Program-made: the position numbers and the translations under genes
In this document: one piece after another, positions 27,643-51,600 of the stretch
Layout: the number at the start of each line of letters is the position of its first letter
Numbering within the stretch: the stretch's first letter is position 1
From: Orbicella franksi
Taxonomy: Eukaryota
DNA: 64,000 bases
Direction of reading: 5' to 3'
Assembly (NCBI GenBank): GCA_964199315.1
Contig: OZ116711.1
Span: 19,840,001-19,904,000 of the forward strand
Notes under the pieces: model-generated
What the model was told of the DNA's origin: nothing
Databases searched by the model: none
What the model saw: only the letters and a program-made list of their open reading frames with translations

Positions 27643-30600
27643 TCAGCACTTGTTGTGGAGCGAGTTCTTCTTGCAGATGGTCTTGCCTTGACCGGCGTCT
27701 CCACGTGCACAGAAACACTCCTTGCATATGTACTGATCACGCTTGATTTGTTCTCTCCACGCGCTTGCACTGGCCTGTTGTAAAGCTCCAAATTTATCCT
27801 TATTCTCTGAACCCAAGAATGGCAAACCAAAGACAGATCCTTTAGTAGCTTTCATCAGGGATACGTATTCGCCTCCTGGTAGGGGAGCTGCGCCGCTTCC
27901 TGTTTCGGGCTTCTTTCTGTAGAACACGTTTCCTCTGAAGTTTTGTCCGATCACCTCGCCACGGAATTTTCTGTACTTGCCGATGACGTTGAGAATGATG
28001 TCCTTGCTTTCCAGCATGTTGCTGATACTCTCAAGGGAAGCGAAATCAGCTAATGGATTGCGGTCCGTGCTGGTCAGCAGAAGGAAGATCTTGGTAGCAC
28101 CTACGGAAGAAACACGAAAGTTGTTTAGCATACTTGTAGGGAAAATGAAGATTTTGAAGTCAAGTATGTCGTCCTGGATTCAGAGTTAGTTTATGGCAAA
28201 TATTCGTTGAATTATTCCGATTCCAATAACGCGCCGTCAAAACAAGGCAACGTCGCGCTTCTTAACAACACTCACCAGGTCTGAATGGATATCTATAAGC
28301 AGCGGCCGCCATGGCTTCCAAAGCATCACCAGTGTCATTCTCAGAGTTCTCGCCAGCGAATTTGAGATGCTCAAACGCAAGCTCCACACTGGCTAAGTCG
28401 TTCATCAGCTGACCGTTAAGTGTAATGGCATGCGGGTGCTCATGTAACAAGCGACCACCGAATCCCATGACGCCGAAGCGGAATGAGAACTTGGAATCAA
28501 GCGATTGTGTTAAACTGGTCAGGAACGTTGGAAGCTTCTCTGCATAGCTCTTCAAGATCGAGGTCTCGTGTACCAGAATGACAACATCCACTGCTCTGTC
28601 TGCCTTTTGGAACCATCTTTGACCGATCTGTTTGCCACCGCAGCGACCTATAGGCAATTAACAAAGGAAGACTGTTAGTGACTTTTGAATTCTTCCTGAT
28701 TTTGTTGTTGTTATTATTGCTGCTGTAGTTGTCGTGAGACTGCATTTTGATTGACGTCACGTTCGTCATTCAGGTTTTCTCGATGCATCAGTTACCAGCC
28801 ATTCATCGGATTGTTTCGCTGCTCGCGGACAGCTCTAGTTTTTCTTTAACTGTACTTTTTGAAGCCTACCATTTGTACATCAAGACAGCTTCTTTCCTTA
28901 AACTAAATTCAAGGGGTTAAATCTGAAAAATACGTCTTCGCAAGTCGAGTTAATGATTAAGATTAAAATCATTAACACTTACCACACTCAGGCAGATATT
29001 CGGCCCATACTCCTTGCAGTCTAACGAGCTCGATGTAAGCAGCAGTTGTGTTACAATGCTTCATGTCTTTAGGCGTGCTGGTGTCGCATTCCTTGTAGTC
29101 AAGCTCACAGGCCTTGACGAATGGCTCGGGGTCAACAACTGAAGAAAAGTGACTGAGTGGAGAGTTCTTGTCTTTGAACAATGCTCGGCAGCGCTGGATG
29201 TAGGTACTCTCCTTGCACTTGGGTTTCTCATTCTCGAGTGTAGAGACTTTGCATTGTGGATCACGAGTGACTTCCCAAGAGTTCACAAACTCGGTCAGTT
29301 TGGAGGTTGGGGTGTTGTAGCTCGTCATCATCTCATCATGGAACTCGTTGTTGTTGGTTCCCAGAAGACCTGCCGGAAAAACGTACATTAGAATGTAGGA
29401 ATTGTACGCGGGATGTGCTTTAAGTTGCCTTCTAAGGAACAAGTTAACGAAGGTCAACAAATAAATTAATTTATATGTAAGGTTTCTCATGGGACCAATT
29501 GAGAATAAGCCATAACACCGATAAACCCTAATGTTAATATTGAAATTCCCATTACTGGTCTCGATACTTTTTTATAGTGCAAGTTGGGAGAATTGATGAC
29601 GTATAGGTTTCGCATTGGACCAATTGAGAATAAGCCATAACTCCGATAAACCCTAATGTTAATATTCAAATTCTCATTACTGGTCTCGATACTTTTTTAT
29701 AGTACAAGTTGGGAGAATTGATGAAGCATAAATGTATTATCCCTATAAATTCTAATGTCAACATTCAATTTCTCCTTACTCCAACCAACGGGGAACATTC
29801 ACTGGTCATTCTTTTGTATAGTGCTGGTTGATGGCGTATGACAATTTAGCCTTTTTCGGCCCTGATGTCAAGGAATAATTTTAGTTCTCTTCAGTCATTT
29901 TAAAACATTTCTTACAGCATAAAAGAATTGGCAACAATTTCCGTTTTGGCTAGATCTACACTTCTTTCGATCACGTCTGTATTCCTCACTTCACTTAAGA
30001 TTCAACTGATGTTGAAGTCTTACCTGCCATTCTTCCATGATACCACTTGGCGATGTTGAAAGTACACAAGAAATGCTCGACATCGCAGATGATCTCCAAG
30101 CCCAAATCGTGTCGAAGCACTATGAAGGAACCTTCTCGTTGGATCGTCGTGTTGAACGTCTCGACAGGCAGCTCACTGTGGTAACCGTCTGAGAGCTTCT
30201 TGCCAGACGAGGTAACCTTCACGATTGTCTCTACTCTGCCGTCTTGGTGGATTTTCACGCTCGAGTCCTCCGTGACTACGATGATGGCGGTCTCCTGACT
30301 CAAGATGGTGAACTTGTTATCACGGACATCTCTGGCTAGGACATACATACATCCGGACTTCTGATAACCGGGGAAGGTGTAGTAGGTTCCATCAAAGGTG
30401 TACACGTGAGGTCCGCCAAAGATCATGGCCGTGCCTGTGGAAAATGAAAATCACAACATGGTCAACAGAGTGTTCTTGAACGGCTTTTAAGGTAGTCGAC
30501 GCGTTATAAACAATCAGAGCGAGGGGATTCTCCTCTTAGCCAATCAAGACGTGCTTTACTACACTCTCTGGCTACTGTAATTTGTGGCTCTGTGGAATTG

Positions 30601-33600
30601 CTAATGAAACTTGCTGTAGTCATGTTAAAAAAAGTGACGAATTTCTACTAATTTCTTGTGATCAATTTAAAAAGATGTTCGATTTAAACTTACTGTTGAA
30701 TGGTGGAATCCAATTGATGGGGTTCAGCAAGTGGGACATTCGCGACACTTGGTGGTTAATCCTCTTCTGCATGTACCGTTTAGCTCCATGCAGGTTTCGC
30801 ACTCGCATTTTCATCATCTTCTTGGAGTGCTCGAGATAGGAACTAGCATCGGTCATGAACTTCACAGTTGTTTCGTGTTCACGAATCTTCTTGTACAGCG
30901 CTAGTGAGTAGTTGCGAAGCTCAGCACATCTCTGCAAAGTCACGTTGTAGACTCCACGATACAGCTTAAGGCAGATCTTCATGGTCTGATTAAAGGCGAT
31001 TCCTGAGTAGTTTCTGGCCTTACTCCAAGCTTGTGGCAAACTGGTGGAATTGCAGATATCAAGAGTGACATTCAGCGCGACTTCATACACCTGGACAGTG
31101 AAATTTCGCGTAGCATTGAATCCAAAACTGCACCATTGACGAGAGACGTTCAAAGCCATTGGGATATATTCCTTGATCATGGTACTGTTGTAAACCATCG
31201 TCATGGCCTGACGAGAGAGGTTCAGAGCCATTGGAAGGTATCTCTTGGTAGTACAATTGTAAACCATCCCGATGGCCTGACGTGAGAAGTTCAAAGCCAT
31301 TGGAAGATATTTCTTGGTAGTACAGTTGTAAACCATCCTTATGGTCTGACGGGAGATGTTTAAGGCCATTGAAATATATTTCTTGACCATAGTACAGTTG
31401 TAAACTCTACTTATGGCCTGACGAGAGAAGTTCAAAGCCATTGGAAGATATTTCTTGGTAGTACTGTTGTAAACCATCTCTATGGTCTGACGAGAGATGT
31501 TCAAAGCCATTGGAAGATATTTCTTGACAATAGTGTAGTTGTAAACTCTCCTTATGGTCTGACGAGAGAAGTTCAAAGCCACTGGAAGATACTTCTTGCC
31601 CACAGAACAATTGTAAACCTTTCTTAGGGTCTGACGAGAGACGTTCAAAGCCATCGGAAGGTATTTCTTGACCATAGTACTGTTGTGAACCATCCTTATT
31701 GTCTGACGAGAGAAGTTCAAAGCCATTGAAAGGCATTTCTTGACTAGGGTAGAGTTGTAAACAATGCTCAGTGTCTTATTTTGTAGGCGTTGACAAAGCT
31801 GGATGGTCCTGTTGAAAGCGATCATCGAGTAGTTCCTGGCCTTAGCTAATACTTCTCGGTAACAATGGACGGTCTTGTTCAAAGCTGTTATCGTGAAGTT
31901 CCTGGTTAGATTCAATGCTTTCCTACATAGTTTGAGGGTCTCGTTGAAAGCTATCTTGGTGTAGTTTCTGGTCTTACCCAACGCCTCGAGTAGACAGGTC
32001 GAGTTGTAAATATCAAGACTAACATTGGCGGCTACCTCGTACGCTTGAACAGTGAAGTTCCTTGAGACGTTTAAGCCAAAAACGCACCACTGTCGGGCCA
32101 TTGGAAGATACTTCTTCACCAGGGTCGTGTTCTTAACAATCAAAATGGTTTTGTTGTAAAGATGATGGCAAAGCCTGAAGGTCTTGTTAAAGGCAACAAT
32201 GGAGTAGTTCATGGTCTTCCCCAGTGCTTCTCCAAGACAGGTTGAATTGTAGATATCCAGAGTAACGTTAGCAACTGCCTTGAATGCCTGAACGGTGAAG
32301 TTTCGGGTGGTATTAAAGCCAAAAGAGCACCACTGGCGGGCTACTGGAAGATACTTCTTCGCCACGTTGTACGCCTGGACGGTGACGTTCCTAGTGGAAT
32401 TAAAGCCAAAAACGCACCATTGGCGGGCTATTGGAAGATAGTTCTTCACCACGGTCGTGTTCTTCACAATCAACATGGTTTTGTTGTAAAGATGATGGCC
32501 GAGCTTGAAGCTCTTGTTAAAGGCAATACGGCAGAGCTTGAGGGTCTTATTAAAGGTAATCATTGAGTAGTTCCTGGTCTTTCCCAGTGCTTCTCCGAGA
32601 CAGGTTGAGTTGTAGATATCCAGAGTGACGTTGGCAACTGCCTTGAATGCCTGAACGGTGAAGTTTCGGGTGGTATTAAAACCAAAAGAGCACCACTGGC
32701 GGGCTATTGGAAGATACTTCTTCGCCACCTTGTACGCGTTGACGGTGTAGTTCCTTGTGGTATTCAAGCCAAAAACGCACCATTGGCGTGCTATTGGAAG
32801 ATACACCTTTACCATGGTCGTGTTCTTAACAATCACCACGGTTTTGTTGTAAAGATGATGGCCGAGCTTGAAGCTCTTGTTCAAGGCAATACGGCAGAGC
32901 TTGAAGGTCTTGTTAAAGGCAATCATTGAGTAGTTTCTGGTTTTACCCAGGGCTTCTCCCAGACAGGTTGAGTTGTAGATATCGAGAGTAACGTTTGCAA
33001 CTACTTTGTACGCCTGAACGGTGAAGTTCCTGGTGACATTAAAACCAATACTGCACCACTGACGAGAAAGATTCAAAGCTATCGGAAGATACTTTTTCAC
33101 CATGGTAGTGTTGTAAACAACCAGTATGGTTTTGTTGTAAATACACTGGTAAAGCTCGCGGGTCCTGTTCAAAGCGATTGTTGTGAAGTTCCTGGATTTG
33201 AGCAACGCATCTCGATATAGTCTGAGGGTCTTGTTCAAAGCTATCGTTGAAACGTTCCTGCCGTGACTCAGTGCCTTTAGGTAGAGCTTCATGGTGACGT
33301 TGATGGCAATCTTGGAGTAGTTCTTGGCTTTACCCACTGCCTCTCCCAGACAGCTTGAGTTGTAAATATCCAGTGTGACATTCTCAGCGACTTTGTACAC
33401 TTCAATAGAGATATTGAGTGTTTTGTTCACACAAACACCGTACCAGTGGCGGGACAGGTTCAAAGCATTAGACAGGTATATTTTGGTGATATTAGAATAG
33501 TGACGTGACAGGTTCAAGGCACGAGATAGATATCTGTTGCTAACGTTGTAACAGTGACGTGACAGGTTCAAAGCACGAGATAGGTATCTGTTGGTAACGT

Positions 33601-36600
33601 TGTAACAGTGACGAGACAAGTTCAACGCCCGAGACAGGTATTTGTCGGTGACATTCTTTACATGCGTCATGTTCAAACTTTTAACGAAGTTCTTGGTGAT
33701 GTTGAAGTAATGGACAGTCATGTTAACATACCGTACAACAACGGGGTGATTCTTGATATGTCTGTAACCACTTCTTACGAATCTTACGAACCTACCAGTC
33801 TTCTGGCGATAGGCAATGGCGAGGTCCTTCGTCATATTCAAGTAATGAAGAGTGATGTTAACGTACCTCTTTGTAAGAGGGTGGTTCTTCGTCAGGTTGT
33901 ATGCGTTGATCAGGAATCCTTGTGTCTGGTTGCGGTAGAAGACAACCAAGTTCTTGGTGATGTTCAAGTAATGGAGAGTTGTGTTGATGTACTTGCCAGT
34001 GAGATTGTGATTCCTTGTCAGGTTGTAAAACTTCATTACGAAGCCGTACGTCTTCTGACGATAGAAAACTGTTTTGTTTATGGCTACTGCAACCCACGCT
34101 TTGCCGATAGTCCTGACGCGGATAGACATCTTCTTTGCTTTGGCCTTAACTTCATCAAAGGTCTCGATTGCTTTTGCCTTAACTTCATCAAATTTCTGGA
34201 TTGCGTTCTGTTTCAACGTCTCCATCTTGGCCACAGCTTGCTTTTTCAGCGACTTCATCATCTCCAGAGCTTCCTTTTTCAACTTTTCCATCTTCTCCAA
34301 AGCTTTAGCTCTCAACTCTTCCATCTTCGCCAAGGCTTTGGCTTTCAATGTTTCAATCTTCTCCAAAGCTTTGGCTTTCATTTTTTCCATCTTTTCAAGG
34401 GCTTCCCGTTTCATGGACTTAAACTTGATTATAGCCTCGCGTTTTAGAGACTTCATCTTGATCACAGCTTCCTGTTTCAAAGACTCCATCTTCTCAAGAG
34501 CATCTTGCTTGAGGTTTTTCACTCTTTCCACCGAGGCTAAGGCAAACGACTTGATGCTTCCATCAAAGGGTCTTGGGTGTGGGAAAACAACAGTAATGCC
34601 CTCGTCTGTCACTTGGATGTACTTGGGAATAGCAGCACGGAGGTCAGTGATGGTTTTCTTGACGGCAATACGAGCATTGCGAATCGTGATACCAGCATTA
34701 CTGATTGAGATGTAAGCTCTGTTGATGGTTTTGTTGAAGGCAACACGGACATCTTGGACTGTTGTGTTGACAGCAATGCGGACAGTTTGGACTGTTTTGT
34801 TGAAAGCAATGTGGACAGTTTGGATTGTTTTGTTGAAGGCAATGTGGACAGTTTGGATGGTTCTGTTGACAGCAGTGCGGACAGTTTGGATGGTTCTGTT
34901 CATGGCATCACGAGCTTCCACGAACCTTTTGTTGATAACCAAACGAACACCGTGGACGGTCTTGTTGAATCTGCGTGTTATCTTGATGAAGGTGACGTTG
35001 AGGTATCCAACGGTGCGATTAACATATCCAATGGTAGTGTTGACGAATTCCGAAGTCTTCATTGCCAATTCGTTGAGCAAGCGAGGACCATGGTTATTGA
35101 CAACTGCCATTGTAATGTTCCTAGTAATGTCAAAACCTCTGCGTACTCGCTCTTTGACAGCATCCTCGAATCCATAGTACTTGCTGATGAAGATTGCCGT
35201 CTTTATCACCTCCACACGCGTTGCGTTTAAGAAGCTAATGACGGGTTTGGAATTGTCCAGGGTTGTATTTAAAGCCAGTAGTGTTGTATTCAAGGCACGG
35301 ATCAGCTGCAGCTTAGTGTTGTTAAACTCCTCCAGCGTCACGTTAACAGCCAGGCGAGTCATGTTCAACGTGAAGTTGTAGGCACGGATGCATAGAGCAC
35401 GTCCCTCAAGGATGGACTCGCGGATTGTCATTTTGCCGAACTTGCGAAGCATGGCATATGGCTTGCTGTCAAGTGTCATTTGGACCGCTTGTCTTGACAT
35501 ATCCATCGCACGGGTTTTCAGGTCATTTGCACGCTCGAATGCCTTCTCTTTCAGCTCGAGTGCCTTCTCTTTCAACACGAGTGCCTTCTCTTTCAACTCG
35601 AGTGCCTTCTCCGTGATGTTCTTCTTCAGTTCTTTTACTAGCTTGCTGCAGTTGTGGTACATCGGTACAATAGTGTTCTTATAAAATGGTAGGACTTTGC
35701 TGTAGTACAAAGGCTTCAGTTCTTCTCTACAGAACTTCATGCATCTTTCCAATTCGTTTCTGCAATACTTCATACCGCGTTCCAAGGTCCTGTTTATCCA
35801 CACACGGGTAAGATTCACTTTTTCTGTGGTCCAGTTACGAGCAATGGCAATAACTTCTTTCAAGGTCACGTTCTTGTAACGATTGATGTAGCGTTCAGCA
35901 ATGGCTCTGTACATTTTAACCAGCCTGGTGTAATTTCTGTATAATGGGGCGAGGTGACTCTTGTAGATGCGTTCGTAGTGACCTCCCAGAATCAGGGTAT
36001 AGTTCTTCACTGCCACTTTAATAATCTTCGTGTAATTCTGGACTGTCGCATTCAGGATCTTTGTATACTTCTGGACTGTCATATTGAAAATCTTTGTGTA
36101 ATTCTGGATTGTTGCATTCAGGATCTTTGTATAGTTCTGAAGAGTCGCTTTCACTATATTAGTGTAATTCTGAACTTTCGCTTTCAGAAGGATGGTATAA
36201 TTCTGAACTTGTGCTTTCAGAAGGATGGTATAATTCTGAACTTGTGCTTTCAGCAAGTTTGTGTAGTTCTGCATTTTCGCCTTGAGAATGGTTGTGTAAT
36301 TCTGGACTTTCGCTTTCAGAATGGTTGTGTAATTCTGGACTTTAGCCCTCAGAATCGTGGTGTAGTTCTTAACTTTCGCAGTCATGTTCTTGTAATAGAT
36401 CTGTCCAATGGCCACAAATTTGCGCGTTAAGTTCTTAGCTTCTAACGTGATGTTCTTGATTTTAAGAGTGACGTTTCTGGCCAAGTCAATGGTCTTGAAC
36501 ACATACTCGTGCTCCACGATTTCACGGAGTTTCATCGCCTTGAATTGGTCAAACTTTTCAAGTAACCTCTCGCGAGTTTCCTGCACCTTCGTTTTGATCT

Positions 36601-39600
36601 TCTCTGCCATCAATTCACTCCTGTCCATAAGTTTCTCCACGATCAGTTTACCCTTCTTCAGTGCCACCTGAACGGCCACTCTCAGCTTACTAGAGGAATA
36701 CTTTACAACACCTTGCCCAGCGTCAACAAGTTCGTGTTGACGAACCTCTTCAATAAGCTCAACCCACATTTCATGATATATGACTTCCTCGATTGGTGTA
36801 TCCTTGATGGCGGCTTTGATCTTCCTCAGAACCTTCTCGGACAGTCTCTCGATGAATTCCTTCGGGTTAGCCATGATCTTTTGGATCTTCTTCTCGAGGA
36901 AATCATACCTTTCCTTGAGCAAAGCATACCTTTGCTTGATTTGGGCTGGGAGTGTTACGTTCAAGTAGAAGATAGCTTCTTTGACCTTAGCCTCCACTTT
37001 GGGTTTCATCTGCTCGACATATTCAACAATCTCGTTGTACTTCTCACTAAGGAATTTTTCAGTCCTGGCGTAACGCTCCTTGAGCTGGTGTTTCTGGATG
37101 TACTCCTGGATGTCTTTATGGGCCATGATCTTTTTAAAGCTGTCGTTCAAAAACTTTCTGGTTTCATTGAGTTTCAGCAGAGTGATGTTCCTTGCTTTTC
37201 CCAGGAGTGGCAGGGAAATGTTTATGGCTTTTTCCAGAAGTGGCAGAGAGATGTTTTTGGTTTTGACGAGGTAAAAGATGGTCTGGTTGTGCATCAACTT
37301 TACATAAGGATGGAAGATAGCAGCAAGGTCCTTGGCAGCGATACAAGTGATGTTGGCGGTTTGGTTGTACAGAGAGATGGCTTCTCCTGTGATGATCATC
37401 ACGGTCTTGTTCAGCTTTTTCAGCTCCTTTTTCCATTCTTCTACTTTAACCTCCAACTTTGCTTTGGCGTCCTTGATGGTTTCTTTTATTTTCTTCTCAA
37501 TGATCTCTCTGTTCTCATGATACTTGTTCTCTACGAGCGCTCTGACCTCGCTGAACTTGCTTTCTGCCAGTTCATAAGCTTCGTAGTACAGCTCCTCCAT
37601 GGTCTTCTCTTTGTTCTCATCGTACCACACTTTAAGAGCCTGAGCGTTCTGGTTCACAAACAACACGGTCTTGTCAGCATATCTCAGCACCAAAACTTTG
37701 CCTCTGAGGTAGTTTTCCTTGACCAAAGGCACAACAGTCACGTTTACGTAACGGATTCCTCGAAGCACCAGAGTACGGGTCTTGTTATAGGCGCCAACAG
37801 TGATATTTCGCGTCACGTTGTAGATGTGCAGCGTGTAGTTGCGGCTCAGGTTGTAGAACTTGTGGTAGTATTGAAGAGTCAAGTTGCGAGTTAAGTTGTA
37901 GTACTGAAGGGAGTACTTGCGGGTGAGATTGTAGTAGTGCAGTGTCAAGTTACGAGTCGCGTTGTAATACTGAAGGGCCATTAGCTTGGTGCGGTTGACC
38001 AGGACAAGGGTCAAGTTGTACGCCCTCAACGTCGCATTCTTGGTATCGTTGAAAAGTTTCACTGCAGCTAAGGTGACGTTCTTGTAAAGTTTCACTGCAT
38101 GGATGGACACGTTCTTGTAAAGTTTCACTGCATGGATGGACACGTTCTTGTAAAGTCTGAGTACATGGAAGGAGACGTTCTTGTAAAGTCTGAGTGCATG
38201 AAAGGAGACGTTTTTGTAAAGTCTGAGTGCCTGGAGGGAGACATTCTTATAGAGCTTCACTGCTTTTAAAGTGACATTGTTGTAGAACTTCACTGCTTGG
38301 AAGCTGATGTTATTGTAGAGTTTCACTGCTTGGACGGTCACATTCTTGTAGAGTTTCATCGCACGAAGGGTGACATTCTTGTAAAGAGCCAGTCCGTGCT
38401 TGCTGGAAAATTCATAAGCTTTGATGACAATCTCCTCGTACGTCATGTCCTCGTACTCTCGCAACTTAGCAATCAATGCATTCACTTTGTTTGTCAGCTT
38501 TTCCCGATAGACGTTGAATTTTTCCAAGGCCTTTTCTTTCGTGTCTTCATAGATCTTCTCCAACATTTCCTTGTACAGGTTGTACATCTTAAGTCCTTCT
38601 TCTTTGTGCTCGTTGTAACACGCCAACGCGAACGTCTTCGCCATGTTGTAAGCTTCAACGGTTTTGTTAACGGTGATGTTTTTGTAAAAGCCAGCCATTT
38701 CGTACGAAACATTTCTCAACTTTCTTTGGCAGTCGAAGCTGATGTTCTTAGCCAATATTCCATACTTGACGAAAACGCTCCTTGTTTCGTTTCCAATGGC
38801 GAGGAATTCCTTCACTAAGGCCTCTTTGGATAGTTTCATGAGGACGAGATCACTTGTAAGGTTCAAGACACGCTGCGTAAGGTTGGTTATGTCCTGCATC
38901 TCTTTCAGTACTTTCACTGTGACGTTTCCAATGCGGTATTTCGCAAGGAGTGCTCTCTCCGTAATGTTAAAAGCTCGAACGCGCGCCAGCAGTTTTTCCC
39001 ACTTAGCTTTAAGTTCCAAGGCTTCTAGTTTACCTTTCAGATCCATCTCCTTCCACGCTTCTTTGATGGGACGAATGAGTTCGAGGGCGCGTAGTTGTTT
39101 TGTAACATTCAAGACCTCCGCGGAGACATTTTTGGCAAGGACTTGGATTTTCTTGATGGAAATGTCCATGATCTCCCTAGGACGCAATTTCAGAAGCTTT
39201 TGGAGAGACTTGTTCAGGGCTATTAAAGACCTGTTGTATATCAGAGGGGCGCGTCGGCTCAGGTTAAATCCAAGTTCAATCGACTGATTCAAGATCTTCT
39301 TGGAGAGGTTAAAGTACTCAAAGCTCTTTCCAATGGCGAAATCCACGATCTCGTCTGGTGTCTTCTGTGAATGGTCGCTGATAAATGTAATGACAGCGGA
39401 GATGTTGCTGTAAAGAGTGTGGTTGAGTGATGTGAGCGTCTCCGATGCGATCTCCAGGGAAAGAAGAACAGCCTTATCCAGCGCTTTGCCGATGGGAACA
39501 CGACGAATCGTGATGTTTCGTACTTGGTACATTATATCCAATGCCATGGGAACAAGCGGTTTGACAATAGGCTTCAAATAGTTTGTGACGTTGCTCTTCA

Positions 39601-42600
39601 GATCATCAGCAAACTTGCCAATGGGTGTGACAGCCTTAAGTACCAAAGGATACGCTTTCTCCTTCACTGAGATGAAAATGTTTCTGCCAAATTTAATGAG
39701 AGGGCGGTGAGTCTTCATCAACTTTCTGTAAGCAACCAAGGACACCCTCCCGACACGAATGTATATGGTCCTGATTTGTTGAGTCACGTTCCGAGCCAGA
39801 TGAATGGCTTGAATGGTAGCATTTCTCATGAGCTTGGGAAGAACTTTGGTCAAATTCTTTGTGAAATTCAACGCTGTTTGATGGATCAGACAGGCCTTCT
39901 TCCTGAGAATCTTGATGTTCTTCCAGGCAGTCTTGTTAAGCAACTCGAACTTCTCCCGGAAGGTCCTGTTCAGCAGCTTGAAATGCTCCTCGAGTGTCTT
40001 GTTTAGAACAGTGATGTTACGAACGCTCAAGAAATGTTCCCCAAGGGTCTTGTTTAGAACAGTTATATTACGAACAATCAGCGTCAAGTTCTTGGCAATG
40101 ATGGTCACATTCTTCAGGGTGCAAGAAGCATTGAAGTTGCATGTAAATTCCTTTACCTCAACCATGTACTTATCATACAGAGGGCCTACTTTCTGTCCGC
40201 GGATCTCAACTTCTCGCATCTTGATGATTAGCTGGCGTGTCTTCACCTTCATTTTCTCGACAAGTTCTGCGGTAGTAACTTCAACCTTTTTGGAAACGCG
40301 CTTGGCGATATCCCCAAGTTTTTCTCCACGAACCGTTACGGTGCTCACCATAATGGATACGTTATTGGCCCAGACTCTAACATCTCGGCTGATGTTCTTT
40401 AGATGGAGGGTGATATTTCCAATTATGGGTGGAAGCACCTCTGTGCGGAACCTTTTGTAGGCGATTGTGACGTTCAGACGAATTCTCTTGTAAAGTTCGG
40501 TGGCGTTACCCATCATCTTTGGAAGCCTGTTGATTGTGTCATTGAGTGTCTGAATAGTGACGTTAAAAAGACTCTGCGTCAAGTTCTGGGCCTTGATTGT
40601 GGCATTCTGGAGCAGTCCTGTGTAGTTGTAATTCTTGACTTGGGCGTACAACTTCAGAACGACAGGTTTGATCTTGGCTTCGAGTTTCTTGACAAGCACT
40701 TGGACCTCTTTGGTAAGGTTTTGCCCCATAAGGATTGTCAGATTGTAGTACCTCAGGGTTACATTTCTGATTAACGTCTTCAGAAGTTTAACTCGGTTCA
40801 TGAGCGTGGTTATGGTCGAGGTATTCCAAGTCAGCGAAAGACGGCTTGCCTCAGCGTTTAAGAGGTACATCAGGCGAGACTCGTTCACCACATTCTCACC
40901 AAATTTGCTTTGGATGGTCACCTGGAGGCGATAGTCATCTGGCATCTCCCCGACAACCTGCCCTGAGATTCTTGGAGTGACGGTTACATTGAAGACAATG
41001 CTTCTTGAAGAGGGGTTAAATCTCAGGAACCACCCTGCTTTGTGATTTTCATAACTGACGAAGGTGCTAACGATATAGTTCTTCCAGTCGAACCTCCCGG
41101 AGAAACCAACGGTACGTTTCAATGCTGAGAATGTCAAGAAGAGTGTCTTGGTTTCCATGTCCAGCTTCTCAGTAAATGTTAGTGTTCGCTTGAAGATCGT
41201 TACGCCAGAAGTGAAGGACTTCGTTAACTTGTCATACTCCCAGGCCAGCGAAAGTGACTTCTTAAACCCTTTCAAATCCATAACTATTCCCATGCCTTCA
41301 GTATTGTCCCAACTAACGTCAAGAACCACTGGTGCATTAGGCAATACGTCAATCGAAAGATGAAGTTTTTGTTCGTCCCACTTTAAGTCGATCTTATGAT
41401 TCCATGTCCTATTGAAGGCTGCAATCTCCGTCGTGAAAAGCAGACCGTGTTCTCTGCTTAACACACCTCTAACTTCCAAAGGAAAAGCGGGGAAGATCTC
41501 AAAGTGGCCTTCGTATTCCCCTGTGCTTTTGCTGTATTGAAGCCAATTTTCAATCTTCTTATCGAAAGCGGAGACCATGCTACTTACTGACAGACCATCG
41601 TAAGTGTTCCAGCTAGTCGTCCATGTAATTGGTCTTCTTGGAATGAATTCGACTCTGACATCAACGGACTTGCGTTCCTTGTACCAGATTAGAGACTGTG
41701 TCATCGTTTTTTCAGGAAGGTACTCGACGGTAAGAGTATTGGAGAGTTCCTCGGAGGTGTTTCTATAAATACCAGTCAGTGAAACCTCCTTGCCCTTGGT
41801 GTAAATCAGCGATACCTTGGCCTCATGATAAGAATCCTCAGCATTGGAGTAGTTGTTGTAAGAAGCATCCCAGCCATACTCGAAGGTGCGGCCCATCGTT
41901 TTAACAATGTACTGGTAGCCGAGTTCGTGACTCTTCTCCGCTCTGGAGTACGTAAGTTTGGAGCTATCAAAGAAAAGACTTTGACTTCCATTTCGAAGTA
42001 TACGGAGCATGACAAGTTCTTTTAGGCCCGTTTCCTTGGTGATAAGGGTGTTCTGCCATTCACCAACAAAGCGACCAATGTGGACGCGATACTCGAGCAT
42101 CTTACGGTGAGCAGTGTTCAAACACATGACAGATGATTTGGCTGCAATTGTTTTGTTCCAGAACAGGACAACAGCAGCTTCTTTCAAGGTCTTGCCGTTG
42201 AGCCAGACGCCTTCCACGCCGACCTGCTTCTTGAAAACGGTGGCGTTAAATCCGATTGCTTTCTCAGTGTCGTTGCGGAAGTAGAGTGACGCACCGACTG
42301 ACTTGTTCACCACTGTTGCATTAAAATGGAGGCTCTTCAACTCGTCGGTGTGGAAGGAGCTCACCCAAGATTCGAAGAAGATTGTCTTGTTAAACTTGGC
42401 AGTCAGACGAATACCACAACACATGGGATCCTCAAACCTTTGTGTTTTCAATTCACCAGTTCGGTTAAGGACGGTCAAGTTGAGGGCCATGCTCCTCTCG
42501 GCCGAGCTATTTGTGAAAACAGCGCATAGTTTCCCACGCGACTGACCGCGGTATTCGGGGTAGATGCAGGCACTTTTCTGCGAAGGTGAATTCTGGAGGA

Positions 42601-45600
42601 GTCCAACAAGAGCGACAGTGGAATTCTGATAAGCAGCCCTAATGACAACCTTGCTCTCTTTCTCTTGGAAGACGAGTTTGCTTAACAGGTCAAACGATTT
42701 GTTGCAGCATCTCATGTTTAGGTGTAAGCCCGTGCTAGCTGAATTACGGAAATAAACTAAAGAGGTATTCATGGTCTTGTTCATAACTGCAAGATTGAAC
42801 TTGAGTCCTTTCTCGCCATCGAGGTTAACCAGGGTCCAGACAGCTTCCATAGTCTTGTTCAGGGCTGAAGCATTGAACTTGACGGATCTTTCGTTCTCGC
42901 TCCTCATGTAACTCCAGACAGCTTCAACTGATTTGTTCACGGCAGAGGTATGGAACTTGATGGCTCTCTCATCCCCATTCTTCAAATACGTCCAGAAGGC
43001 TTCTACAGTATTGTTCAAGGCTGAAACATTAAACTTGATGGATCTTTCATTGTCACTCTTCGAATAACTCCAAACTGCTTCAAGAGTTTTGTTCACGACG
43101 GAACCGTAGAACTTGATAGCTCTCTCGTCCTCAGTCATTGCATAACTCCAGACAGCCTCGATAGTTCTGTTCATGGCTGAAGCATTGAACTTGATAGCTC
43201 TCTCGACGTCGCTCCTCACATAACTCCAGACAGCCTCGATAGTTTTGTTCAAGGCCGAAGCATTGAACTTGATCGCCTTCTCATTCGTGTTGCTTGCATA
43301 ACTCCAGACGGCCTCGATACTTTTGTTCATGGCTGAAGCATTGAACTTGATAGCTTTCTCGTCTTCGCTCATCTTATAACTCCAGACAGCCTCGATGGTT
43401 TTGTTCAAGGCTGAAGCATGGAACTTGATAGCCTTCTCATTCTTGTTGCTTGCATAACTCCAGACGGCCTCGATACTTTTGTTCATGGCTGAAGCATTGA
43501 ACTTGATAGCTCTCTCGTCTTCGCTTATCTCATAACTCCAGACAGCCTCGATGGTTTTGTTCAAGGCTGAAGCATGGAACTTGATAGCCTTCTCATTCTT
43601 GTTGCTTGCATAACTCCAGACGGCCTCGATACTTTTGTTCATGGTTGAAGCATTGAACTTGATAGCTCTCTCGTCTTCGCTTATCTCATAACTCCAGACA
43701 GCCTCGATGGTTTTGTTTAAGGCTGAAGCATGGAACTTGATAGCCTTCTCATTCTTGTTGCTTGCATAACTCCAGACGGCCTCGATACTTTTGTTCATGG
43801 CTGAAGCATTGAACTTGATAGCTCTCTCGTCTTCGCTTATCTCATAACTCCAGACAGCCTCGATGGTTTTGTTCAAGGCTGAAGCATGGAACTTGATAGC
43901 CTTCTCATTCCTGTCGCCTGCATAACTCCAGACAGCCTCGATTGTCTTGTTCATGGCTGAAGCATTAAACTTGATAGCTCTCTCGTCCTCGCTGCTCACA
44001 TAACTCCAGACAGCGTCAATAGTTTTGTTCATGGCTGAAGCATTGAACTTGATAGCCTTCTCATTTTCGCTCCTCTCATAACTCCAGACAGTCTCAATAG
44101 TTTTGTTTATGGCTGAAGCATTGAACTTGATAGCCTTCTCATTCTTGCTGTTCAGGAACGTCCAGATAGCTTCTACAGATTTGTTCGAGACAGAAGCATT
44201 AAATTTGATGGCTGTCTTGTCTCCAGTCTTCACGTAACTTAAGACAGCTTCAGCAGTTTTCCTCATGGCGGAAGCATTAAATTTAATGGAACTTTCATTC
44301 TCCTTCTTCAAGTAACTCCAGAAGGCCTCGGCACTTCGGTTGAATCCAGTGGCGTTGAATTTGATCAGCTTCTCGTTCTTGAAATTAATAAAGGTCCACA
44401 TGGTCTCTATCGTCTTGTTTAAGGCAGATCCGTTAAACTTGATGCTCTTCTCAGTGGCAAAATTCAGGAACGATAAGGTCGTTTCGATGGATTTATTAAC
44501 GGCGTTGGCCTTGAACTTCAAACCCTTCTCGCTCGTGAAGTTAAAGAAGGTCCAAGTGGCTTCAGTTGTCCTGTTTAGAACACTAGCCCTGAACTTCAAA
44601 CTCTTCTCGTTTCGTGAATTGAGGAAGGTCCACCTGGCTTCTATGGTCTTGTTTAGAGCGCTGGCCTCAAACTTCAAACTGTTCTGGTTGTCCGATTTAA
44701 GCAGGGTCCAAGTGGCATTGACGGTTTTGTTAACTGCACTTGCCTGGAACTTCAAACCTTTCTCGTTTTCCAGATTAAAGAACGTCCAAGTGGCGTTAAC
44801 AGACTTTTTTAAAGCACTTGCCTGGAATTTCAAGCTTTTCTCGTTTTCCAAGTTAAGGAAGGTCCACGTGGCATCCATAGTTTTGTTAACTGCACTTCCC
44901 TGGAACTTTAAACTCTTCTCGTTTTCCAAGTTAAGGAACGTCCACGTGGCGTTAACGGTCTTCTTCAAAGCACTTGCCTGGAATTTCAAGCTCTTTTCGT
45001 TTTCCAAGTTGAGGAAGCTCCAGGTGGCATCAACGGTTTTGTTCATAGCATTTGCCTTGAAGTTCAAGCTCTTCTTGTTTTCCAAGTTTAGGAATGACCA
45101 AGTGGCATTGATGCTCTTGTTTCCAGCACTAGCATTGAAAATCAAACTCTTCTCGTTTGGCAAGTTAAGGACACTCCATGTGGAATGGATGGTCTTGTTT
45201 AGAGCAATGGCCTTGAACACCAAACTCTTCTCAGTACTCTGGTCGATGAAAGTCCAGGTGGCATCGATGGTTTTGTTTAAGGCAGAAGCATTCAAACGAA
45301 GTCCTTTCTTGCTTTCGAGGTTGAAGTAGGACCACATGAGCTCGGCCGTTTTGTTCAAGGCAGTGACGTTAAATAACAATCCTATCTCTTTTCCAGCGTT
45401 GACATACGACCACACAGCCTCCAAGGTCTTATTTAAAACGGTTGCATTAAGCTTGATGCTCTTTGCGTCTGAGAAATTGCGGAAGGTAAGAGCACTTTCG
45501 ATGGTGTGATTCAAGGCCATGGCGTCAAATCGCAGTCCTTTCTCTTTGCCCACGTTGACATACGACCAGAACGCTTCGATGGTCTTATTGATGGCAGTTG

Positions 45601-48600
45601 CATTGAACTTTAAGCTTTTTCCGCTTGTAAGGTTAACCAATGTCCAAGCTGCTTCTATGGTCTTGTTTAAACCTCTTCCATTGAACCTCAGCCCCTTCTC
45701 TTGACCAATGTTAACGTAAGACCATACAGCGTCCATGGACTTGTTCAGGAGCAATCCGTGGAACTTGATTCCTTTGTTCTGCGTGAGGTTGAAGTACGTC
45801 CAAACAGCTTCTGCTTTGCTACCAAGCACCGTGGCGTTTGTCTTTAGGGACTTCTCGTTGGTTGCGTTGACAATACCTGTGTACCATCTGATGACACGGT
45901 TCTTGTTGTCATGGCTGGCTGTGAAACGGATACCCTTTTCGTCTCCAGCCTTGGCGTAGGATCCACGAAGGGTAAATGACTGATCGCGTGGACGGGCAAA
46001 CAAGCGGAGAACACCTTCTTTCTGAGCTTTGAGAAGTCTGCCTGTTAATTCAATTCCAGCCTTCGTTGGTTCGTTGCTGAAGCTAAAGACGAAGTTGTCC
46101 TCCTCCTCTCCGAGATTACCATTGAAGCTGACCTCTGTCTTTGTGCAGGTATGGTTCGCCAGGAAGTTGACACTCTTCTTGGGGATGTTCAGTTCTCCAG
46201 AGGCGTACAGATACTTGCCTGTCCAGTACGTCATATTGCTGACGAAGCCATACACACCTGACCTGTTGTAGAGCTTTGTCAGCTGCTTGATGGTGTAGTT
46301 TTTGTACGATGCGGACAGTTGAACGCCAAGCTCTCGGGTGAGGCCACTCAGTTCCGTGTTGTTGAAAAAGTGACCATTTAGGACGATGGGGTGACCATAG
46401 ACAACGTCTTTGGCGGAATACGTCAGGTTCACAGCGTGCGTTATGTTGTTGTAAGTCGCCTCGAACTTGCCAAAATTTACGCCAACAGCACCGGTAGACA
46501 TGCTGAAGAGTTTGCCGTCTTTCTTGAGCCACAATGTACCGTTAGCCTCAAAGTTCCGCTCCCACATTGCTCCAGGAGTAGACATTTTGGCGATAACATC
46601 GTATTTGTTGTCATCCTCGGTTTCCAGGCGTTCTGCTATCAACTGATATTTCGTAAGCTTAGGATCCGTTCTTTGCATCGACAGACTGAAGGAAGCTGGG
46701 CCAGAGAACGGGAAGAATGGCGACTCGTAGTCACGATAACCCAACGGCAGAGAGAGTTGACCACAGAATGTTATTCCAAGAACACGTGTCATGTTCAGGC
46801 AAGGTGTTGGCTGCAAGAAACAATCAAATGGTTTATGGTTACCAAGGTTACTTAAAGGGACAATGCATAAACGACTTGTCTTGATGCATACATAACGATA
46901 GCTTCAAGACAGACAAATTTGAATTTTCAATGCTCTCAAATCAAAAGGTGTCTATCAGAAATAGGCTCTATGTGAGAATAGAGCAAAACACTTGACATCG
47001 CGGGTTCAAGTATCTTTACATTGTTTCTTTTGTTCTTTATCCAAAAGCAACCATGAACTCTACAGTTTCGCTAGCAAATACTACTTACACTTTGTCAACA
47101 AATTTGAGACAGTGTCACACAACAACAAATCGGAGACAGTGACATACAACATAATTATTAACTTACTTCGATCCTCCTTGGTGTTCCTTCAATGGGCAGT
47201 TTCTCGTCGTTGAGAGTGGTGAAAAGCGACGAACTGTAATGAAAGTAAAGGAGCTACGTCACGGTTAACGCATCGTGAAACGTTTAGCCTAAATTTTCAA
47301 ATTCGTTGTTTGTATTAAATCAGTGTTAATCTTTTCCATCCTTTATCATCCTTGCTCGTGTCTTTCTGTCTTATTCAACTATTATTTTAAAGATTCTTTT
47401 AATCGCGGACAAAATAACTCAAAATACTGTGGCTGAATTCCTTGCGTTTATCATAAGCTCTAAAAATAATCAATTGTACTTACGATACGTTGACAAACTG
47501 AACTGGCTCCTCAGGGACGCCGACTTCGAACTTTAAGATTTCTCCTTGAGTATAAGTGGCGTTTCCTTTGATCTGAGTAACAGTGTACAAAGATGAGTTG
47601 ACAAAGATACCAGCCTCCGCGTACAAAGCGCTGACTCCCATGCGACCAGTGATGTCAACAACGGCACTACAGGAAAGAAAAACACCACGAAAAATGAGAT
47701 AGAGTTGAACAAAATTAGGCTGCCACCACCGGCCATTATTAGGAAGTAGTCAGTAGCTGGATGAACTCTTGTCAAGCCAACTAGACATTGTAATATGGAT
47801 GTGGTCATCGAGTTTAAGGTTCCATCATAACTGACTTGGTTTATACTTGAAGGGTCCTCATCCCCGTGGACGAAATATAAACTCTTCTCAGAGACTGTCA
47901 CACGCGAAATAACAATTTCGGCTATTAGTTATTAACATTGTTCACTCTCGCTGTCTGCATTACAAATAATAAATGTAGGAGAAGTAAGAGACTTATATCA
48001 ATTAATCTACAACTTCTATGTACTCCTTTTTTATTAAATTTCGACAGTATTACACATGCAAGTATAGGAGCGCTTTTGGAATATGCCAAATTAAACGTTG
48101 CAAAAGTTGTGTAGTGCAATTCTACTGTGAGATAAAGTATCTAGTCGTTTACGTCTTGCGTTACCAGCCGTCCGAGCTATAAACAGGGGTTATTTTTAGC
48201 TTATTACGCAATGTAGTGAAAGGATTACGTGACCAGGTAAAAGAAGCATTCGTAGGTATTATTAGTAACTTTTCCGAAGACATACCTTGGTTTGACGTAG
48301 CCTCGTACATCAAAGTTCATTTTTCCCCAGAACATGTTCCTGATGTCAAACTTTCCAGCGAGTTCTACCGCGGCCACAGTGGTTCCCTTGGCGCTCAGTT
48401 TGAGTGGAAGACCAAGGATGGTGGGGACAGTAGTCTCGGCGTCTAGGAACATCATGCTCTTGCTGAAACTCTTCTTGCCTCCCTTGGCCAATGCGATCAA
48501 GATGTCAATCATGTTGATTTTGTCCACTTCGTCATTCAACCAGCTGATGTCGTCGAAACTGGCAAGTCTCATTTCGTTACCAAACATCTTCACAGAAACG

Positions 48601-51600
48601 GCTCCTGATGGATTATGCTTTCTCGTGTCCATCTACAAAGGAGAAAGGAAGTCACGCATCACGCATTACGAATTGATTAGATCAAGTCACAGCGGGGTGA
48701 TTCTTGCATTCCTTCTCAGGTCAATATTTTTTAGCAAAAAATTCCCGCTCAATTATGGATTATTATGGAAACAGTTACATGATGATAAAAGAGGATTGAA
48801 AAACATCGATTCAAGATTCCCGACATGCATCCTGTTGAACTGTTGTCGTGAATAAATTACGATATTATGGTAATAATTTTTGCTTCTTAACCTTTTAAGA
48901 GGTGTGTTGCAAAGCATAGACAGCCTCTTTATTTCTCCAGTATTCCCCAGTCCCAGAAGCGTTTTCCCGGACTTACCCTTCGGTGCAGTTTATTCAAATG
49001 GTTCTCTACTTTGTTGATGTCGTCATGAATGCTCCTCGTCCTCCTGAGTGGCAGATTTCTCACTGATTTCTCCTCCTTATCCCTCTCCTCGTGGGGTTTC
49101 AGGTTGAACATCTTCATGATGCGGTCGTCAGGGTAGTAACCATCTTCTCCAAACATCTGCTCAATGAGAATCTCGAATCCTTCAAAGCGTGCTGCGGCCT
49201 CGAGGACATTGATTGATGCACCCAACACGTCCACTGTCAAGTTGACCATGGCACTGCGTGGGAAAAAGCTGTTTGGATGGTAGATAAGATGGCTCTGCGC
49301 TGAACCGCCGAATCTCAGGACATCTGTAAGGTTGTGCAAGAATAATAAAATTATGAGATGACAGACAACAATGTTCGTGTAAACCATGTTTCCAAGATCA
49401 TTACGAAAACTGACCTCGTTTTCTAGTTAAATCTCTCGAATGGCTACATTGAGTTCGTGTACAGCGCATTAAACGCGGTGTAACAATCATGGCTATTGGT
49501 TTAAACCTAAGCTAGGTCACGACGTTGTTTTATATGCTACATAAAATCCTTTTGAACAATGGGCCCTGTTTGTGGGATACACTCTCTGTGTTGGATCTTT
49601 TCGTTGGCTTTAAAACGCGCTGCCAAATGCATTGCCTATTTACAACGCTTGTCCATGGGAGAGTTTATAGTTTGCATCAAAACACCAAGTTGATCAAGTC
49701 CTACATTTTCATAACTTGCTTCTCCTGTTTAGTTAGGGTTGGGTAATAGGAAGTTAGCACAGTTATCTTACCACTGTAGAATGACCCTTCCCATGCACGT
49801 GAGAATCTCAGTCTGTTCAGATTGAACTCTCGCAGCTTCATTCCATTAAGTGCGTCTTTCATCATCTCGGCCTGAGGCAGACCATGGACTGGTTCGGTCG
49901 AATCCATGGCATTCGTCATGTGCGACCACACGAATGATCCCACCTGATTATTAACTTCGTTCTTGAGGATACCGGCAACGCGTTTGAAGACCTCTGGGCT
50001 TGGACACTTCATGAGTGCCAGGTACGCTGCGATACGGATCTCAACGTCTAGATTGTACTCGCCATAGATCTGCAAAATCTGATCCGTCATTTCTTCATTG
50101 CAGGGCAAGCGTCGGAAAGCCTCTAGAGCTGCGATGCTCATGTTGACTGGAACATCTGGGTTAAGGGCGCATTTCAGAAGGACATTTTCGGCAGCAACGG
50201 GGCGACCCGCGTTTCCAATGGCTTTCAAGGTGATAAGAATGTTTTCGAAATCCTCTGGAGTTTTGCCTTTGCATTTTGTGTTCAAGCGAGACAGCAAGAA
50301 ATTTTCTGCCTTGGTGATCGGGTTCTCTTCATCCTGACGGAGAAAAAAGAGCAAAATACCTTATTTCACTATTGAAGGCTGCTAGATACAATATTAATGA
50401 AGAGCCCAGTATAATACAAGTTAAGTAAGACAACCAGAACGCCAGAAAAAGTACCATCTACTGGTTTCCTAATCAACATTTATGCAATAACGTTTTTCAT
50501 GGTATCATGTCAGGGATGAAACCAAGACATCATTACCTGGATGTCTTTCTAACTTTTTCTGCCCGTAGTCCTTCAGTTATCCATTAAATTACCCAGTCAA
50601 AGTATAAACTATCACCAGTCTCCATAGATTTCGTATAGTAGTAGTTGGCAGAATTGGCTCTGTTATAAACATACATTTTCTCTCGTCCAACCAACTTCTT
50701 TACATTTCGTATAGTACTTGGTAGAATGTGTCTGACCATTTATCTCCATCCTCTAAAGCGTCAAGTTCTCTTGACGCTGTTTTAAGTTCTCTTTGAACTG
50801 AAAAGAAGCGTTTAAAATAGTTGTTAAAACTATACCTCATCATTGCACTCCTGTGGGCTGTTCTCACAAACTTTGTGAATGAGTGTTCCGAGAGTCAACA
50901 TGGCGGTTCTGCCAGGATGCTCTTCACAAAGCTCCAGTACATGTCTAACAGTCTCCTTAGAGGGATTTGCTGCCATGGCCAAGCCTGCCAAGAACATGTT
51001 TCCACGTTCATGGCTGACCAGATCGTTTCTAATGGCATGGCTCATGACTTTAGCACATCCGCCGTTGCCGCAGTGAGGCAGAGCGTCGTAGAAATACTCA
51101 CTGAAAGGGGAAAAAATACCAGAAACGGGAGGTTAGCATTTTGACCTTTAAACTGGCTGTGCAAGGTGGTTCTGTAGATATTCATTACGCTGTACAAGGT
51201 GGTTCTAACTTGAGATGAGGATAGAAGCCTAGTGCATGATCATTCAAATAAAAGCTACTGAGCAGTACTTTCATGTGGTACTGTTTATTATGCTGCACAA
51301 ACGGGTTCTAACTTTGAAATCTGAAGATGACAGCCTACTTTGTGACCATTCAAATGAAACTATCAAGCAGTTCTTTCAGTTGCTACTGTTTAATAGGGAG
51401 TTTTAGCGATGACGGTGGCGACGGCGGGGACGACGCCTTGTAAAAAATGAATTAATATTTTATCTTCGAATATCGCAACTGTGTAAATCAGTTCAGTACG
51501 CCTATCGGTCTAAAAACTTTCTCAGGCTAAACATGCACCGACGTCGTTCAATTCCAAAAGAATATACGAAATATTAGCCATTGCGGTTCGCGTTCTCCAA

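Follow-up and report, generated by a model that had tools for sequence, protein, structure and literature searches.

Dense, conserved N-glycosylation sequons in the predicted lipid-binding belt of a stony coral apoB-type protein

Lipoproteins of the apoB type are the universal bulk lipid carriers of animals, and their water-facing surface is normally made up of charged residues together with a handful of glycans. Here we describe the gene for such a protein in a 64,000-nucleotide stretch of the genome of the stony coral Orbicella franksi (assembly GCA_964199315.1, contig OZ116711.1, positions 19,840,001 to 19,904,000; hereafter the window, whose own numbering is used below), in which one giant exon encodes several hundred N-glycosylation sequons. 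Among the closest described systems, Nematostella ApoB is reported as a lipid carrier in endocytic mesentery tissue and in mesogleal cells, and in the latter it co-localises with fed fatty acid; a sea anemone with a tagged ApoB knock-in is available, and the paper does not report how densely ApoB is set with sequons or glycans (bioRxiv 10.1101/2022.01.24.477498). APOB/apolipophorin marks the gastrodermis of Oculina arbuscula, a facultatively symbiotic coral, and is higher in its symbiotic cells (bioRxiv 10.1101/2024.06.20.599951). Our literature search returned only expression and localisation work and found no description of sequon or glycan density in cnidarian apoB.

The gene lies on the minus strand, as do all features below unless stated otherwise. 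Its most conspicuous part is an open reading frame of 5,384 amino acids (aa; 30662-46816), the single frame of that size in the window, within which the giant exon (30694..46810) accounts for 5,372 aa. The exon begins with DUF1081 (PF06448; aa 6-107; 31.9 bits against a cut-off of 25), directly after the large lipid transfer (LLT) module. From its domains and its closest relatives, we identify the gene as the scleractinian coral apoB/apolipophorin orthologue and the giant exon as its predicted lipid-binding belt. Membership of the apoB/apolipophorin group is in itself ordinary and already annotated in relatives.

Sequon excess and conservation in the belt

The open frame contains 320 N[^P][ST] sequons, all of them inside the giant exon (5.9 per 100 aa, or about one per 17 residues), and 320 of its 460 Asn residues (70%) sit in a sequon. 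A preliminary description of this DNA had put the number by eye at several hundred, which the count bears out, and had proposed comparing it with composition-shuffled controls. When we shuffled the whole sequence 2,000 times with composition kept, we obtained 63.8 ± 7.0 sequons (maximum 87; z = 36 for the observed value), and 1,000 local shuffles within 40-aa blocks, which preserve regional composition, gave 68.6 ± 7.1 (maximum 87). The observed density is therefore far over the shuffled expectation.

Controls for the direction of the motif were at chance, with 58 occurrences of [ST]xN, 40 of Nxx[ST] and 45 of N[ST]. We found NP[ST] once, NxC not at all, Pro at position +3 never and Glu at the X position 5 times, and NxT outnumbered NxS (229 vs 91) although Ser is more frequent than Thr outside sequons. 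This combination of a directional motif with Thr and Pro biases indicates that the sequons obey the known preferences of oligosaccharyltransferase.

The excess is restricted to the belt. The LLT module of the same gene contains about 8 sequons in about 1,000 aa where 6.8 are expected, close to the 7 or so estimated earlier, and the C-terminal VWD part contains 3 where 3.0 are expected. In five full-length orthologues from corals and sea anemones, the corresponding counts were 6-8 in the LLT module (expected 5.6-7.2) and 3-5 in the tail (expected about 3), against 107-269 in the belt (expected 31-56). All of the hexacoral orthologues are enriched 3-6 fold, and in each the enrichment is confined to the belt. 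In the window protein, a non-repetitive belt stretch of 1,470 aa (aa 1341-2810; 38387..42796) carries 66 sequons against 14 expected (4.7-fold); because this stretch is enriched as well, the excess is no artefact of repeats.

The same stretch could be aligned colinearly with 11 orthologues, and we used it to ask what is conserved in a sequon. The number of the 66 sequons found in the same column ranged from 61 in an orthologue at 80% identity down to 33-35 in sea anemones at 35% identity. Identity at the sequon Asn was 0.83, the highest of all residue classes (the other top classes being Pro at 0.81 and Trp at 0.77), compared with 0.50 for Asn outside sequons and 0.56 for all residues. The X position stood at background (0.57), while the +2 position kept its exact residue at 0.69 and was Ser or Thr in 86% of the alignment cells. 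Exchanges between Ser and Thr made up 54% of the changes at +2, compared with 22% at other Ser/Thr positions. A conserved Asn, a background-level X and Ser/Thr exchange at +2 form the pattern to be expected from selection that acts on the whole sequon as its unit. Together with the directionality of the motif from Asn to Ser/Thr, this position-specific conservation supports selection on the sequons as such, as the preliminary description had supposed.

Repeat arrays, sidedness and charge

Tandem Repeats Finder located arrays of 78/156, 33/66, 54, 72/141 and 363 nucleotides (nt) in the giant exon. At least 8 unrelated repeat families carry sequons, and the spacing between sequons has modes at 4, 5, 7 and 11 residues. 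The 26-mer array runs to about 40 tandem units of 78 nt each, among which are younger dimers of 156 nt (42782..45901). The two sequons per 26-mer claimed earlier are both present as types, NK[TS] in 35 of 40 copies and the NAS type in 21 of 40, but the mean is 1.65 per copy and not a full 2. One sequon per 11-mer, also claimed, is nearly exact for array A (LYKNV[ST]..A.K; 38024..38386; 10 of 11 copies), array B (KVQNYT.ILKA; 35981..36376; 11 of 12) and array C (NKTIQTV.IAF; 34703..34933; 6 of 7), but it fails for array D, a perfect K/E-rich 11-mer array (aa 4099-4230; 34127..34522) with zero sequons. Every copy of what had been called a 22-mer does carry exactly two sequons (N[FIVL]S and N[SCY][TS]), although the unit is really 23/24 aa (72, 141 nt; 31137..31762). 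The exon also holds 18-aa units (54 nt; 33440..33655) with two sequons each, NLS and NV[TS]/NIT, and 121-aa units (363 nt; 31973..33061) with Cys pairs and 11-12 sequons each. Array D sits within a sequon-free stretch of 218 aa (aa 4029-4246; 34079-34732) with 19% Lys and a net charge of +25; this bare basic patch could be a receptor or proteoglycan-binding site.

Within the 26-mer array, at 44900-45669, contigs assembled from three RNA runs jump back by 209 at 45108->44900 and have further rearranged joints. These suggest copy-number differences between individuals, or collapse or expansion of the array in the assembly or the contigs.

To relate the sequons to a folded belt, we used AlphaFold2 (AF2) models for secondary structure and wheel projections for helices. 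The model of aa 3-722 is all-beta, with two strands of 8-9 residues per 26-mer, at low confidence (predicted local distance difference test, pLDDT, 57.8). On these model strands the NAS site occupies the middle of a strand with polar parity; of the 18 sequon Asn residues inside strands, 15 have this parity, and the NK[TS] sequon fills the three-residue hairpin turn of the 26-mer. Sidedness in the beta part was read from parity on the model strands, a crude 170-degree moment scan being uninformative for aa 1346-1990. For the 11-mer region (aa 2760-3100), the model shows long helices throughout (pLDDT 44.8; only its secondary structure was used). Across the helix-rich two thirds of the belt, 80% of 225 sequon Asn residues point more than 90 degrees away from the local hydrophobic moment, which exceeds the average for charged residues. 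Projected on 11/3 wheels, the array consensuses place the Asn 104-146 degrees from the hydrophobic centre (132 degrees in array A), on the polar-side flank. The earlier placement of the Asn on the polar face was thus right in that the sites are off the apolar side and the NAS site is on the polar strand parity; the NK[TS] site belongs instead to a hairpin turn and the 11-mer Asn to the polar flank, in models of low confidence. We also considered class-A helices in which glycans replace the central acidic cluster, and dropped them because the wheels show no clean class-A pattern.

A further view of sidedness came from sequon-poor homologues. In columns where the coral sequons are conserved, these proteins have K (24%), N (18%) and other polar residues, with 14% hydrophobic residues against a background of 45%, which argues that the sites mark solvent-side positions of the belt.

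In a tree of the DUF1081/first-beta region, the homologues form two deep clades. The 21 sequon-rich rows all belong to the first clade (12 scleractinian-type, 7 actiniarian-type, including Actinostola sp., and 2 others), which also includes one long-branched sequon-poor pair. The 27 rows of the second clade have 0.1-0.8 sequons per 100 aa, or 0.2-1.4 times expectation. This tree is compatible with a single origin of sequon density, where 'Hexacorallia-specific' refers to the Oculina, Stylophora, Montipora and Actinostola rows only. Many second-clade belts, among them P0026, P0061, P0063, P0066 and P0068, have 0.2-0.6 times the number of sequons expected from their composition, an apparent avoidance of sequons that is the opposite of the coral state.

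Sequon density and charge are inversely related, both between and within proteins. The coral belt is rich in Lys (10.3%) and Arg (5.3%), with a net charge of about +417, in keeping with the Lys/Arg-rich backbone noted in the preliminary description. The sequon-poor belts of the second clade (e.g. P0015, P0020 and P0026) are 28-31% charged, compared with 21-24% on the coral side, and across 30 homologous belts sequon density inversely tracks charged content (Spearman -0.79, with shared ancestry ignored). Within the giant exon, 60-aa segments show the same relation (rho -0.69): segments with 0 sequons are 37% charged and 16% acidic, those with 6-7 sequons 16% charged and 3% acidic, a larger drop than dilution by the motif residues accounts for. 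Sequon-free stretches of the helical part are K/E-rich. Our best reading is that, in this lineage, N-glycans would stand in for the charged, and especially the acidic, side chains of other apoB-like belts.

The same genome holds a paralogue (G000 contig 1, L006:4019-7705, plus strand, about 23,600,018-23,603,704) whose 1,229-aa exon, again with DUF1081 at its start, encodes 146 sequons (11.9 per 100 aa) against 35.5 expected, with 3.8% Lys and 12% charged residues. At least 8 RNA runs contain it, and its belt appears saturated with sequons and nearly uncharged. An ungapped alignment shows 76% identity to P0033, a hyper-sequon fragment from a TARA metagenome scaffold with Vit_open_b-sht exons upstream; P0033 is not the protein of another phylum but the orthologue of this paralogue. 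A sequon-rich homologue of 1,287 aa, P0018, has runs of 8-12 His in two hairpin loops of its 26-mers, where the window protein has a variable acidic loop.

A proposed glycan coat and its alternatives

We consider it fairly probable, given these sequence patterns, that the belt carries a dense N-glycan coat, favoured by selection, which takes the place of charge as hydrophilic cover, and that the lipoprotein particle is sugar-coated. As the nascent chain enters the endoplasmic reticulum (ER), oligosaccharyltransferase would meet one sequon per about 17 belt residues co-translationally. The sequons would point off the lipid side, at polar mid-strand positions and hairpin turns in the beta part and on the polar flank of the 11/3 helices, and glycans would be confined to the side that does not bind lipid. 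Given sequons on the non-lipid side, N-glycans are expected to cover the water-facing surface of the secreted lipoprotein almost continuously. With most sites in use, up to about 320 glycans would add roughly 0.4-0.6 MDa of sugar to about 0.78 MDa of polypeptide, an inferred mass. From standard dimensions we estimate one site per about 165-190 square angstroms of strand or helix surface, which would give a continuous shell in which a few K/E-rich, sequon-free patches would stay bare. As likely benefits we see the shielding of a very large amphipathic protein and its steric solubilisation in a way that does not depend on salt; both would act while it is assembled in the ER and again outside the cell. 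The preliminary description had proposed that such a brush could have a mucin-like function and provide protease shielding, colloidal stability in seawater or a ligand array for lectins, symbionts or microbes.

Several observations weigh against this coat. Site occupancy is a prediction, which the conservation of the motif supports indirectly, and close sequon spacing together with co-translational lipidation could leave many sites unused. The NAS site has been lost in some young 26-mer copies, with His or Gln in place of Asn; not all sites can be needed. Both AF2 models are of low confidence (pLDDT 57.8 and 44.8), strand alternation is moderate, the wheels are moderately amphipathic (hydrophobic moment 0.35-0.40) with the Asn on the polar flank and not at the polar centre, and a Foldseek search of the PDB with the beta-array model found nothing at E<=0.001, the model being too uncertain and flexible for this to bear on kinship with apoB-100. 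The charge relation across homologues may reflect essentially one evolutionary event when shared ancestry is considered, and the relation within the protein is partly simple dilution.

These points leave room for other explanations, of which the most sceptical attributes the sequons to repeat amplification and an Asn/Thr-rich composition and takes them for by-products, largely unoccupied and functionless. Much of the exon does consist of tandem repeats copying the motifs of founder units, and a site is missing from some copies with no obvious ill effect. This account nevertheless has to meet the 4.7-fold enrichment of non-repeat sequence and the presence of sequons in each of at least 8 unrelated repeat families; composition-matched and local shuffles reach only 64-69 sequons, reversed and shifted motifs stay at chance, and the sequon Asn is the most conserved residue class, with sites kept at 35% identity. 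We regard it as strongly disfavoured and give it very little credence. A functional alternative places the role of the sequons mainly inside the cell, where they would recruit the calnexin/calreticulin cycle and prevent aggregation of a 5,000-residue chain during lipidation in the ER, the particle coat being a by-product. The sequence evidence for selected sequons applies equally here, the belt is the aggregation-prone part of the protein and the only enriched one, and N-glycans at the N-terminus of human apoB aid its assembly and secretion. Yet about 30 other, more distant apoB-like belts of comparable size get by with no more sequons than chance would give, or with fewer, so that folding help alone needs no such density, and the inverse relation to acidic residues points to a property of the finished surface. 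As the main explanation we find it unlikely, while noting that an intracellular role and the proposed coat are compatible and not mutually exclusive.

The glycans could also serve as an address label, a multivalent ligand for host lectins or receptors, symbionts or microbes that steers the uptake or exchange of lipid cargo. Regular spacing in several arrays would suit a periodic multivalent display. Expression data fit as well, since APOB is higher in symbiotic cells of Oculina arbuscula (bioRxiv 10.1101/2024.06.20.599951) and Nematostella ApoB co-localises with fed fatty acid in mesogleal cells (bioRxiv 10.1101/2022.01.24.477498). The trait is, however, shared with sea anemone orthologues, so these data do not tie it to symbiosis, and a label would not need hundreds of sites along the whole belt. 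We judge this role improbable, more so than the intracellular one.

Taking the selected glycan coat further, we tentatively suggest, as a possibility that we hold to be rather doubtful in its full form, that hexacorallian apoB particles are 'glyco-lipoproteins'. Several hundred occupied N-glycans would then make up about a third to nearly half of their non-lipid mass, having replaced acidic side chains more than one scleractinian-actiniarian divergence ago. The result would be a sterically stabilised, protease-resistant and lectin-readable carrier, of which the paralogue (12 sequons per 100 aa, 12% charged) would be a near-saturated version. If true, the glyco-lipoprotein would be a previously unrecognised build for the water-facing side of a lipoprotein. 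A belt of 5,000 residues that has a site every 17 residues and its sequon Asn as the best-conserved residue class would amount to a different physical solution to the solubility and integrity of lipid particles, and each particle would take a great deal of sugar to build. Because the gene is gastrodermal and raised in symbiont-bearing cells of a related species, the coat could bear on the movement of lipid derived from algal photosynthate through reef corals.

Gene architecture and comparison with known systems

Homology searches (tblastn) with the closest orthologue trace the whole gene from about 59363 to 27727. Its domain order is a signal-like N-terminus, LLT module, DUF1081, belt, VWD and C8. 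Exon 1 (about 59316-59363) has the start Met followed by a short hydrophobic stretch, and its first 12 residues are identical to the N-termini annotated in orthologues; from this shared N-terminus, we predict that the protein bears a signal peptide and enters the ER as a secreted large lipid transfer protein (LLTP). The secreted-particle context assumed in the preliminary description thus agrees with the signal-like N-terminus and the predicted apoB-type LLTP architecture. The upstream LLT exons (about 50836-51099, 51897-52130, 52847-53014, 53602-53760, 54434-54775 and 57711-57875, with approximate bounds) were found by tblastn with the Oculina orthologue and match Pfam Vitellogenin_N.

The last five exons of the LLT module (47167-47233, 47484-47666, 48286-48632, 48977-49323 and 49772-50335; span 47167..50335), which match Vitellogenin_N and Vit_open_b-sht, are joined to one another and to the giant exon by RNA contigs with canonical GT..AG introns (4 RNA libraries from 3 studies). 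Spliced RNA contigs from 4 runs set the 5' boundary of the giant exon at 46810 (CT..AC, that is GT..AG on the minus strand), whereas its 3' boundary was inferred from the orthologues' junction '...PPFNS|TAMIFGG'. Downstream lie the C-terminal exons (30007-30432, 28975-29373, 28274-28648 and 27727-28101; span 27727..30432), placed by tblastn and Pfam, the first with VWD (PF00094, E 4.1e-11) and the second with C8, an apolipophorin-type C-terminus. The LLT module matches PF01347 (Vitellogenin_N) on three exons (E 3.6e-9 to 1.2e-23) and PF09172, the open beta-sheet domain, on one (E 1.9e-21), all over the curated cut-offs. The gene is transcribed, with at least 10 RNA runs from at least 8 studies containing at least 94% of the words sampled from a 3.5-kb unique part.

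The closest proteins are from stony corals: Oculina patagonica (79%), Stylophora pistillata 'Apolipophorin' (66%) and Montipora capricornis (58%). For structural comparison we used the LLT module (about 1,000 N-terminal residues) of the Oculina orthologue, which is 79-81% identical to the window protein, in place of the window's own LLT exons. Its best match among solved structures was human apoB-100 (E 1.4e-72), with far weaker matches to lipovitellin (E 1.3e-32) and MTP (E 9e-5).

Elsewhere in the window, downstream of the apoB gene, a separate single-exon open reading frame of 511 aa (22496-24031, minus strand) has a C-terminal NIF (NLI-interacting factor-like phosphatase) domain (E 1.9e-55). 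Two long antisense frames inside the giant exon, at 36713-37894 (plus strand, 393 aa) and 44340-45329 (plus strand, 329 aa), are most likely a side effect of repeats and codon bias and not genes.

In human apoB-100 (PDB 9bd1, 9bde, 9coo and others), about 19 sequons are spread over 4,536 residues, or about 0.4 per 100 aa, compared with 6.0 per 100 aa in the coral belt, and the human protein is not known to have the C-terminal VWD and C8 domains that the coral gene possesses. Like the coral protein, it is a secreted N-glycoprotein in which an LLT module is followed by a very long amphipathic belt largely from one giant exon, which in the coral gene starts with DUF1081; a further difference is that the coral belt is assembled from several young tandem arrays. 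Insect apolipophorin II/I and Nematostella ApoB share the domain order of the coral gene, including VWD near the C-terminus, and the NCBI label for the Stylophora orthologue is 'Apolipophorin'. The sequon-poor belts of the second clade are homologous in DUF1081 and belt and similar in length.

With the exchangeable apolipoproteins (Apolipoprotein A1/A4/E, PF01442) the coral belt shares an 11-aa periodicity and weak matches (E 1.6e-7 and 7.8e-5), whose scores of 31.7 and 22.9 bits fall far below the curated cut-off of 90, so that we do not count the belt as belonging to this family. The better of these lies in the sequon-free K/E array D, while the other coral arrays hold a sequon at a fixed 11-mer position.

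Viral glycan shields, such as that of HIV Env, and mucins resemble the proposed coat in having a dense, hydrated sugar layer that hides the polypeptide, although neither has homology with the coral belt. The sequon density of gp120, about 5 per 100 aa, is in a range similar to that of the belt. Mucins carry O-glycans on disordered Pro/Thr/Ser tracts, whereas the coral N-sites are predicted to lie on one side of folded, amphipathic, lipid-binding strands and helices. Set beside these systems, what is unusual in the coral protein is the density of its sequons, their restriction to the belt, their conservation and their apparent replacement of acidic residues.

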